Assembly: GCA_907165135.1 (NCBI GenBank)
Contig: OU015568.1
Location: 8,866,001-8,930,000, forward strand
From: Oikopleura dioica
Taxonomy: Eukaryota > Animalia > Chordata
Direction of reading: 5' to 3'
DNA length: 64,000 nt
A program made the position numbers and the translations under genes. Positions 61,548-64,000 of the stretch are shown one piece after another. Position 1 is the stretch's first letter. Each line of letters opens with the position of its first letter. The notes under the pieces are model-generated. The model was not told the DNA's origin. It searched no databases and saw only the letters and a program-made list of their open reading frames with translations.

Positions 61548-64000
61548 ATGGTCGAATTCGAGAATGATCCATGCTGCTTCAGCGACATCACCAAAATTCG
61601 AACGAAATCAATCCATTTCGACTGGACTATCGACTATTCCCTCAAACAGGTCAAAGGGTCAGCGGAATTGACCTGCGATGTCCTCGAAGAAGGCCTCTGT
61701 ACATTCATGTTGGATACCCGAGAACTGGATGTTCAAAAAGTCCTGATCGAGGGAAACGAAATGAAGTTTTCCTTCGGCCAAGCTGGCCAAAATGGCAAAT
61801 CAGAAGCGCTAGGCAAACCGCTTATCATTGTTCTTCCTGATGTTCCACCACCAAAAGGAGAAGATCTCGTCGTAAAGATCTTTTACAACACGACTGAGAA
61901 ATGCTCTGCTCTTCAGGAATGGATACTTATGTTTTTTATCGGGGTATTTAAATTTGCTACTGATTTTTCTGTGTTTTCTTGGAATTCGAAAAAGAAACTT
62001 CATTAGTTTCATAGTCAAATTTTTCGATATCTATTTCAATAAAATCATTGATAAGCAAAGAGTATCCTTGCAAAGTGGCTTACAAAGGAGCAAACCGCCG
62101 GTGGCGAGCACCCTTACATGTTCTCCCAGTGCCAGGCGATTCACGCCCGCTCTCTCTTCCCCTGCCAAGATTCTCCTGGAGTCAAGATCAAGTACACGGC
62201 CAAGGTCTCCGTTGCTGCTCCTCTCGTCGCCCTGATGAGCGCCAATCTCCAACACGATAAGACGGAGAAAACCGATTCTGTCAACACTTTTTACTTCTCC
62301 CAACATGTTCCTATGCCCTCCTATCTGGTCGCGATCGCGTCCGGCGCTTTGGAGAGCCGAGAAATTGGCCCTCGATCGCGAGTCTGGTCGGAGAAAGAGT
62401 TCGTCGACAAGGCTGCTTTTGAATTTTCGCAGACTGAAGACTTCATCAAGGCGGGAGAGTCCCTCCTCGGCCCTTATGTTTGGGGACAGTACGATCTTCT
62501 CGTCCTCCCTCCTTCTTTCCCCTACGGAGGGATGGAAAACCCCTGCCTGACTTTTGTCACTCCGACTCTTCTTGCCGGCGACAAATCTCTCGCAAACGTC
62601 GTTGCTCACGAAATCGCCCACTCCTGGACAGGAAACTTAGTGACTAACGTAAACTGGCAGCATTTCTGGCTCAACGAAGGACATACAGTTTTCGTTGAGC
62701 GAAAGATCGTCGAGAAAATTTACAATAGGCCGACTGCGGAGTTCCAGGCAATTGGTGGCTGGACAGGAAAGGTACACTTTTTTATCCCCTTTGATTCGGG
62801 GTAGTCTTCGTTGATTTCAAGAAAGTTGAGAACCTTGAAAAGGCCTTGTGGAAACTGTAGACACTTTGGGAGCAGAGCATGAGTACACCAAGCTGGTGAT
62901 TAAAAACGATGGCTCTGTTGACCCAGACGATTCTTTCTCCCGGATTCCATACGAAAAAGGCTTCTCGCTTCTTTACCACCTCCAGTCGCTCGTTGGCATT
63001 CCTAAGTTTGAAGGCTTTCTCAAAGGCAACGGTGATAGAAAAAGAGTACCTCAATAAAGATTTAATCGAGGAAGTCGAGCTTTTGGGCGAAACGCATGAA
63101 TTCACCAAATTGGTGATCAAGCAATCCGGGTCAATCGACCCCGACGACGCCTTTTCGAGCATTCCTTATGAAAAAGGTTTCGCGCTGTTGTACCATCTTG
63201 AGACTCTTTTGAGTGTTCCTAAGTTTGAGGCATTCCTCAAAGGTAAAAACTTTTATTGAGCCATTTTTCTATCACTTTTCGAAGCCTACATCGAGGCATT
63301 CTCCTACAAAGCGTTGGATACTCAACAATGGAAGGACCTTCTTTTCAAGCACTTCTCTGGTTCAGAAGAAGATACCGCTATTTTGAATAAGGTCGACTGG
63401 GATGCTTGGTTCAACAACACTGGAATGCCTCCTGTTCCTAAGCCACAGTACGATACAAGCCTACAGGATGTGTGCACCGCTGTAAGTTTCAAAAATCATA
63501 AAATTTTGATGCTTTTTCTTTCCCGGCTCTTGAATTTTTGATCAATATTCTACCCTTGAATTCAAATTCCAGTCGAACCTTTGTTCATGGATCGGCTGAG
63601 CCATTTCACGGGGAGATCATACTTCATAGATTATTTCGCGTTCCTTTTCTCATACTTTTCCGAATTTGGAGAAAAATGAATCGCCGATTTTCTAACAGAT
63701 TCTTCAGCTGGCGAAAAAGTGGCGCGCAGGTGACGGTGCTCCAAGTGCGGATGATATTGCCTCATTCAATTCCGGTCAGCTTCAAGAATTCCTCGACCAG
63801 CTTGTCCTCGATAGTTCCTTCTCACCCGAGCAGGTTCAGCAAATGTCCGATGTTTATAAGGGCATTTCAGAGTCGCACAACTCGGAAGTGCGTTTCCGAT
63901 GGATTCACCTTGGCCTCAAATCACGATTCAAGCCAGCTATTGATAATGCTTTGGCGATGGTCACCGAACAGGTAAATTTGCCCCCGAGTTCGTCTTTGAC
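61548..64000 (+). CDS. LTA4H: Leukotriene A4 hydrolase / M1 aminopeptidase (runs off the window)
   Basis: [41 protein letters not shown] (HEXXH-X18-E), [14 protein letters not shown]. Contains a duplicated exon pair (62843-63025, 63060-63242). Confidence 0.96.

Follow-up and report, generated by a model that had tools for sequence, protein, structure and literature searches.

Two tandem 183-nucleotide exons, probably used in a mutually exclusive manner, in an LTA4H gene of Oikopleura dioica

The stretch of DNA analysed here (the window) comprises 64,000 nucleotides (nt) of the genome of the appendicularian Oikopleura dioica (assembly GCA_907165135.1, contig OU015568.1, positions 8,866,001 to 8,930,000) and contains, towards its end, the leukotriene A4 hydrolase (LTA4H) gene g10912 of OKI2018_I69, which is located on the pseudo-autosomal chromosome (record name Oidioi.mRNA.OKI2018_I69.PAR.g10912.t1). 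Two adjacent homologous exons of this gene, termed A and B, very probably constitute a two-member mutually exclusive cluster generated by tandem duplication, with one exon of the pair present in each messenger RNA (mRNA). According to this reading, the GA donor at 62767 would join the upstream exon with one of the two, A or B, followed by the downstream exon, to give two enzymes of 617 amino acids (aa) that would be identical outside a stretch of 61 residues equivalent to human 351–408. The features concerned are as follows (window positions):

61548–64000, plus strand: LTA4H gene (g10912), defined by splice map and Pfam matches; the terminal exon (64022–64171) lies past the window end
62076–62766, plus strand: constitutive upstream exon, with the HEIAH...E zinc motif and GGMEN; ends in phase 1 at G62766
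62767–62842, plus strand: GA-AG intron preceding exon A, 76 nt, from the lineage alignment
62843–63025, plus strand: exon A, 183 nt, phase 1; found in isoform t1 and in each of the four O. dioica transcript assemblies
63026–63059, plus strand: A–B spacer, 34 nt, with the exon A donor at its 5' end, the exon B acceptor at its 3' end and stop codons inside
63060–63242, plus strand: exon B, 183 nt, phase 1; found in isoform t2
63243–63284, plus strand: GT-AG intron after exon B, 42 nt, from the splice map
63285–63481, plus strand: constitutive downstream exon, joined to A or B according to the splice map and public proteins

The complete exon set (61548–61916, 62076–62766, A or B, 63285–63481, 63708–63971 and 64022–64171) was assembled in a scripted splice map, which yielded exactly the two public proteins P0001 and P0122 (617 aa each). 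Exons were searched singly, and whole-protein comparisons were made on public protein records. The introns of the exon A form measure 159 (GA-AG), 76 (GA-AG), 259 (GC-AG), 226 and 50 nt, and those of the exon B form 159, 293 (GA-AG), 42 (GT-AG), 226 and 50 nt. The donors involved are thus GA at 62767 (upstream exon), GC at 63026 (exon A) and GT at 63243 (exon B), while the acceptors are all AG (62841–2, 63058–9 and 63283–4). In O. dioica, a known peculiarity is the frequent occurrence of GA-AG introns where the context is AG|GAA (PMC7072748), and approximately 11% of introns are non-canonical in the OKI2018_I69 assembly (PMC8008620). The coordinates, 183-nt lengths, phase, translations and splice sites that had been proposed for the pair in a first-pass annotation of the window were all borne out by sequence reading and by script.

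The mutually exclusive pattern is already present in the public annotation, in the form of automatic models: GenBank CAG5085510.1 (g10912.t1, P0001; 617 aa) carries exon A, while CAG5085513.1 (g10912.t2, P0122; 617 aa) carries exon B and is identical to t1 elsewhere. These isoform records were reached through a cluster listing for which the long first open reading frame (ORF) of an LTA4H paralog in the same genome served as query. The OKI2018_I69 annotation was produced by AUGUSTUS, for which intron hints came from RNA sequencing (RNA-seq) reads and exon hints from a Trinity assembly, and it contains only some 1,500 extra isoforms over 17,260 genes (PMC8008620); judging from this annotation method, the second g10912 model probably reflects junction evidence. 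At the transcript level, exon A and the GA donors are found in four independent transcript contigs of about 2 kb each (JGI P0129–P0131 and Logan P0133), and exon-A transcripts from other lineages (P0129–P0133) read ...GGWT-G-LVET..., confirming that the GA donor is used. Exon A is likewise the version in the older gene model from Bergen (CBY14877.1). Exon A therefore appears to be the default or major form, since only exon-A transcripts were recovered for O. dioica.

The two exons are identical at 120 of 183 nt (65.6%) and at 41 of 61 aa (67%), and their nucleotide differences are distributed over codon positions 1, 2 and 3 as 18, 8 and 37. Both open in phase 1, and G62766 completes the first codon of either one, giving Gly in A and Asp in B. 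The 34-nt spacer is not a multiple of three and contains stop codons, so that straight read-through from A to B is impossible. Both exon peptides match Pfam Peptidase_M1 above threshold at the same profile positions (131/134–183), and each aligns in a solved-structure search (e.g. 1HS6) with residues ~351–408 of human LTA4H. As the first-pass annotation had stated, alignment to human LTA4H revealed that Tyr383 (PYEKGF) is kept in both exons and that Phe occupies the position of Tyr378; Asp375 (DPD) is likewise kept in both. In terms of domain content, Peptidase_M1_N, Peptidase_M1 and Leuk-A4-hydro_C were identified by Pfam on the LTA4H exons, and the same three in P0001, while HEIAH...WLNEG (HEXXH plus a Glu 18 residues on) and GGMEN are present in P0001 and P0122. 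On these motifs and domains g10912 is assigned to the LTA4H subfamily of M1 zinc aminopeptidases. Vertebrate and ascidian LTA4H (Ciona P0009 and P0014) share with the Oikopleura protein the domain set, the zinc motif and GXMEN, and also Tyr383, Asp375 and the Arg/Lys pair of the C-terminal domain. The position of Tyr378, the residue associated with leukotriene B4 triene geometry, is Phe in A and B in every lineage, which bears on epoxide-hydrolase chemistry and not on family membership. In contrast to the Oikopleura gene, the segment is present once in each of the non-appendicularian LTA4H proteins retrieved (compared as proteins).

At least four O. dioica lineages have the exon pair, with both members intact and their order unchanged, as follows:

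Bergen reference scaffold (L010): exon pair present
Four North-Atlantic-type metagenome/Logan contigs (L013–L016): exon pair present
Okinawa-like metagenome scaffold (L012): exon pair present, with an N-run across the middle of exon A
Third lineage (L011, L100): exon pair present
Fourth lineage (L101): exon pair present

The spacer measures 34 nt in two Okinawa-type sequences and 30 nt in Bergen, L3, L4 and others. The exon A donor is GC in Okinawa and GA in every other lineage, while the exon B donor is GT throughout. To assess selection, the ratio of nonsynonymous to synonymous substitution rates (dN/dS) was calculated by the Nei-Gojobori method, with the following result for the Okinawa and Bergen sequences:

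Okinawa vs Bergen, exon A: dS 1.9, dN 0.053, dN/dS 0.03
Okinawa vs Bergen, exon B: dS 1.2, dN 0.055, dN/dS 0.045

Among deeply diverged lineages, dN/dS ranged from 0.03 to 0.05 for exon A (dS 0.6–1.9) and from 0.02 to 0.08 for exon B (dS from 0.35 to saturated); comparisons with the third and fourth lineages were saturated at synonymous sites, and pairs with the close L3/L4 lineages were noisier, with dN/dS of up to 0.38. For deeply diverged pairs with dS exceeding about 0.6, the range over both exons is 0.02–0.08. At the protein level, Okinawa–Bergen identity is 95% for exon B and 88.5% for exon A. Both exons are thus kept across lineages under strong purifying selection, an outcome of the conservation and dN/dS comparison that the first-pass annotation had proposed as a check. 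As an unused exon could not stay intact and constrained at this level, exon B is expected to be translated and to matter. The first LTA4H intron varies by lineage, being a 159-nt GA-AG intron after residue 123 in Okinawa (window 61917–62075) and a 228-nt GC-AG intron after residue 143 in Bergen (L010 811–1038), while the first 359 LTA4H residues are without an intron in the third lineage (L011 944–2023). These first-intron differences represent intron turnover between cryptic species.

Evidence of alternative use was also obtained from a second appendicularian species, whose LTA4H (P0004) is 60% identical over the query region and whose cluster includes P0171. The contigs encoding P0171 (L102, from a metatranscriptome) and P0004 (L103) display 98–100% nucleotide identity either side of the exon, but L102 contains a different 183-nt exon, ~65–70% identical, which is joined without interruption and in unchanged phase to the exon before it. 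The alternative exon thus replaces the A-type exon in this second species' transcript. L102 (JGI metatranscriptome contig Ga0192958_1013405) retains, at positions 1279–1324, the 46-nt GT-AG intron that follows the alternative exon, and this breaks the frame; the retention may reflect an unfinished splicing intermediate or regulated retention. In a related genomic contig, L098, the matching alternative exon is exactly 183 nt in length and is followed by a GT donor. Taken together, the two public transcripts, the purifying selection on both exons and this second-species transcript support the mutually exclusive use that the first-pass annotation had suggested for the two exons.

Inclusion of both exons would keep the reading frame, so nonsense-mediated decay could not police it and prevention would be needed during splicing. 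The first-pass annotation had proposed that exclusivity is enforced by the tiny intervening intron, which is plausible. No other intron of the gene is as short as the spacer (30–34 nt, against 39–50 nt for the one next in length), which stays at this length in every O. dioica lineage, whereas the other LTA4H introns differ by tens of bases between lineages; for comparison, the median intron length in O. dioica is 48–51 nt (PMC8008620) and approximately 30 nt is the usual lower limit of animal introns (PMC13644364). By eye, the spacer resembles the 3' end of the upstream intron, with an invariant GTGAT where that intron has TTGAT, its own likely branch site. This GTGAT is the likely branch site of exon B, positioned 8–10 nt from the exon A donor, and the duplication unit would have been 213–217 nt, comprising the last ~30 nt of the intron plus the 183-nt exon. 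With a probable branch site at ~8–10 nt from the exon A donor, the spacer would be too short to be removed.

Another, or an additional, means of enforcement is suggested by an inverted repeat that flanks exon B, the two arms of which were identified by repeat finding and are listed here with a further spacer element:

63032–63043, plus strand: left arm (GTGATAGAAAAA), core TGATAGAAA, in the spacer
63264–63275, plus strand: right arm (TTTTTCTATCAC), core TTTCTATCA, in the intron after exon B
63046–63051, plus strand: spacer element GTACCT, complementary to the exon B donor AGGTA (63241–63245), with which RNAalifold predicts a helix (alignment columns 27–31/221–225)

The arms are 12 nt long and 100% complementary in the window, and the 9-nt cores, which are mutual reverse complements and represent the two strongest conserved intronic blocks, are invariant in five lineages; in other lineages the 9 bp are followed by four more pairs past a one-base bulge. 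Shuffled sequences reached the repeat length in 1–33 of 5000 trials per lineage. Folding of the exon-B-containing intron gave pair probabilities of ~0.5–1.0, near 1 for central pairs, in three lineages, and the alignment fold generated by RNAalifold keeps the stem. It is hypothesised that this conserved pairing of 9–13 bp between the spacer and the post-B intron loops out exon B and would place the donor of exon A close to the acceptor downstream, and such a predicted loop-out fits exon A as the default form. We infer both the spacer-length and the RNA-pairing mechanism, and the two are not mutually exclusive. The invariant 9–12-nt inverted repeat flanking exon B is newly described here. The GTACCT element is also complementary, by sequence reading, to AGGTAC at 62770–62775 just inside the upstream intron; with a helix of only 4–5 bp, any GTACCT pairing is a still weaker proposal than the stem. 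A second inverted repeat beside exon B (63050–63063 and 63247–63260; 14 nt, 86% complementary) extends from the acceptor to just past the donor; no conservation of it was seen in the Bergen lineage. The alignment of the intron before exon A shows no change between lineages in its initial 11 nt (GAAAGGTACAC) or in several internal blocks, and a conserved small hairpin in this intron (62785–62801; CCCC/CCUCC ... GGGG with loop TTTGATT) is matched by aligned blocks in L010 and L011. The ends of that intron, AAGGU and ACCUU/GCCUU, can also pair, and these blocks are conserved despite synonymous saturation.

A number of observations weigh against mutually exclusive use of the pair or against the proposed means of enforcing it. 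No exon-B O. dioica transcript was found among the assembled ones (4/4 carry exon A), and the case for exon B use in O. dioica is made by RNA-seq-guided annotation and selection only. Rare double inclusion or spacer retention may occur. In L098 no A-type exon was found in the 488 nt upstream of the alternative exon and no complementarity was found flanking that exon, so that neither proposed enforcement mechanism is universal. Furthermore, RNAalifold detected no covariation in the stem, the nine core pairs of which never vary, and conservation of the left arm may reflect no more than a role as the exon B branch site. The transcript evidence could be taken to mean that exon B is an unused or decaying duplicate, that the t2 model is an annotation artefact and that only the exon A enzyme is made, as the four assembled transcripts and the Bergen protein model would suggest. 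A scan of metagenome contigs with exon B returned, among the matches listed, which came from the generic SIPYEKGF pattern, only distant LTA4H sequences (at most 63% identity) and no O. dioica transcripts, and a word search of the exon B region among proteins of 64–203 aa recovered only genomic ORFs of other lineages (P0134 and P0135) and no spliced fragments. A decaying exon B is nevertheless considered very improbable, as the exon is intact, its AG acceptor and GT donor are conserved in all five lineages sampled, its dN/dS is 0.02–0.08 with synonymous sites near saturation, it is better conserved than A, its pocket residues are fixed and a homologous alternative exon is present in a transcript of a second species. 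It is extremely improbable that both exons are routinely included after removal of the spacer to give a 678-aa protein with the segment repeated: the frame would survive, 183 nt being a multiple of three, and the spacer does end in G[C/A]...AG, but no such protein occurs among 14 cluster members or in the annotation, the spacer is the shortest intron of the gene and at the usual animal lower limit, and a repeated strand-and-helix segment bearing the catalytic Tyr would be expected to misfit the M1 fold. That the duplication is an assembly or haplotype artefact, a possibility that the first-pass annotation had left to be checked, is scarcely credible; the copies are only 65.6% identical in DNA, and the same pair is found in the same arrangement in the Bergen scaffold, in at least five independent metagenome/Logan contigs and in the third and fourth lineages.

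With mutually exclusive use of A and B as the preferred reading, it may be asked what sets the choice. There is a real, if less than even, chance that exclusivity and isoform choice are set mainly by RNA pairing together with trans-acting factors and that the short spacer is a leftover of the duplication breakpoint. The conserved inverted repeat around exon B, the resemblance of the spacer to the 3' end of the upstream intron, the several intronic blocks that are invariant despite saturated synonymous sites and the L098 alternative exon without an A-type neighbour within 488 nt would all fit such control. Against it, the spacer keeps to 30–34 nt in each O. dioica lineage among introns that vary by tens of bases, and the stem is short and A/U-rich in addition to its lack of covariation.

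Compared with other LTA4H proteins, both Oikopleura exons have a one-residue insertion after 369 and a one-residue deletion near 402. Both O. dioica exons and the other appendicularian species share two appendicularian-specific length changes, which argues that the duplication arose within appendicularians. The A-type exons (of O. dioica, its paralog and four other species) share Arg380, Gln394 and mostly a Gly first residue, while the states seen elsewhere among animals, namely Ser380, an acidic first residue and Glu394, are retained by exon B and by the second species' alternative exon, with the exception that position 394 is Gln in exon B of two O. dioica lineages. Exon B has most of the residues that other animals share in this segment, Ala377 among them, and at the pocket positions that differ exon A has those typical of appendicularians. 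In a tree of the 61-aa segment, the appendicularian A-types grouped together without O. dioica exon B (support 100/99), although a topology that unites all O. dioica exons was not rejected by the approximately unbiased (AU) test (p = 0.21). In the same tree the alternative exon of the second species grouped with its own A-type exon and not with O. dioica exon B, a grouping that would fit independent duplication or concerted evolution alike. A duplication older than O. dioica is favoured on this evidence, and one old duplication is favoured because Ser380 and the acidic first residue are shared as ancestral states. A second LTA4H gene on the same chromosome (C1:4328449–4331628, minus strand; L002, L005) is apparently intact over 617 residues, is 84% identical in the large exon and is without the first intron. 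Its 183-nt exon is present as a single A-type copy (80% identical to A and 62% to B) with a matching GA donor context, B is absent, and no protein closer than 84% to this paralog was found in a protein search.

The first-pass annotation had viewed the pair as a swap of the segment carrying the catalytic Tyr and the substrate pocket, and this view was upheld in part: pocket residues differ between the exons, while catalytic Tyr383 and Asp375 are unchanged in both. Human numbering was taken from alignments of each exon to human LTA4H, and the differences that are fixed in every lineage include the following:

Human position 362: exon A Tyr, exon B Phe
Human position 369: exon A Asn, exon B Gln
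Inserted residue after 369: exon A Asp, exon B Ser
Human position 372: exon A Val, exon B Ile
Human position 377: exon A Ser, exon B Ala
Human position 380: exon A Arg, exon B Ser
Human position 388: exon A Ser, exon B Ala

Residues 362, 367, 369, 374, 375 and 378 of LTA4H line the L-shaped substrate cleft (PMC6207623), and Asp375, Tyr378 and Tyr383 act in catalysis (PMC8954237). From these residues, the pocket would be more polar with exon A, and more hydrophobic and typical of animals with exon B, and the two isoforms are likely to differ in substrate-pocket specificity because these pocket differences are fixed. The proposal that one isoform would favour peptidase and the other epoxide-hydrolase activity was not supported by the residues concerned, since Asp375, Tyr383 and Phe378 are the same in A and B. 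Lipoxygenase-domain matches above the Pfam cut-off were observed at C1:15911350–15912454 and C1:6121081–6121559 (L105, L106). Because the genome has these loci, lipid epoxide substrates remain conceivable: O. dioica may be able to make lipid hydroperoxides or epoxides, among them a leukotriene A4-like substrate.

Mutually exclusive exon pairs that arose by tandem exon duplication are known from, for example, PKM exons 9/10 and alpha-tropomyosin exons 2/3. The LTA4H pair resembles these in that adjacent homologous exons of equal length and phase would be used one per mRNA and swap part of a functional site, and it resembles tropomyosin exons 2/3 in that the branch site of the second exon would lie too near the donor of the first. 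It differs in its spacer of 30–34 nt, compared with more than 200 nt in tropomyosin, in having only one canonical donor among the three involved, the others being GA or GC, and in that the gene encodes an M1 aminopeptidase. Control of mutually exclusive splicing by RNA pairing is known from Drosophila Dscam and 14-3-3 xi, and intronic pairing from FGFR2 IIIb/IIIc. As in those genes, conserved complementary intronic elements lie on either side of the alternative exon, with its loop-out as the predicted effect; in contrast to them, LTA4H has one short predicted stem (9–13 bp), no covariation and no clear competition between a docking site and selectors. No paper on such an exon pair in LTA4H or an M1 aminopeptidase, or on this gene in Oikopleura, was found in the literature, and both isoforms have apparently never been described there, though they are annotated.

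A more far-reaching scenario is offered tentatively, and in its entirety is rather doubtful: the pair would predate the split between O. dioica and other appendicularians, with B holding the ancestral animal-type pocket and A an appendicularian-specific one, and would be run by a sub-minimum spacer and an invariant stem that loops out B and overlaps the B branch site and the A donor, to give two M1 peptidases with different substrate ranges. If this is true, one gene supplies two M1 peptidases of different substrate range, beside a separate A-only paralog. As the two enzymes are otherwise identical and come from one gene, the pair offers a natural test of how LTA4H pocket residues 362–380 set substrate choice. 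It also provides a compact model for the enforcement of exclusive splicing in a genome with introns of ~50 nt and frequent GA donors, the whole device (donor, 30–34-nt spacer, exon and stem) occupying less than 500 nt and being of minigene size. The findings further indicate that conserved, selected isoforms lie behind some of the alternative models in the O. dioica annotation.

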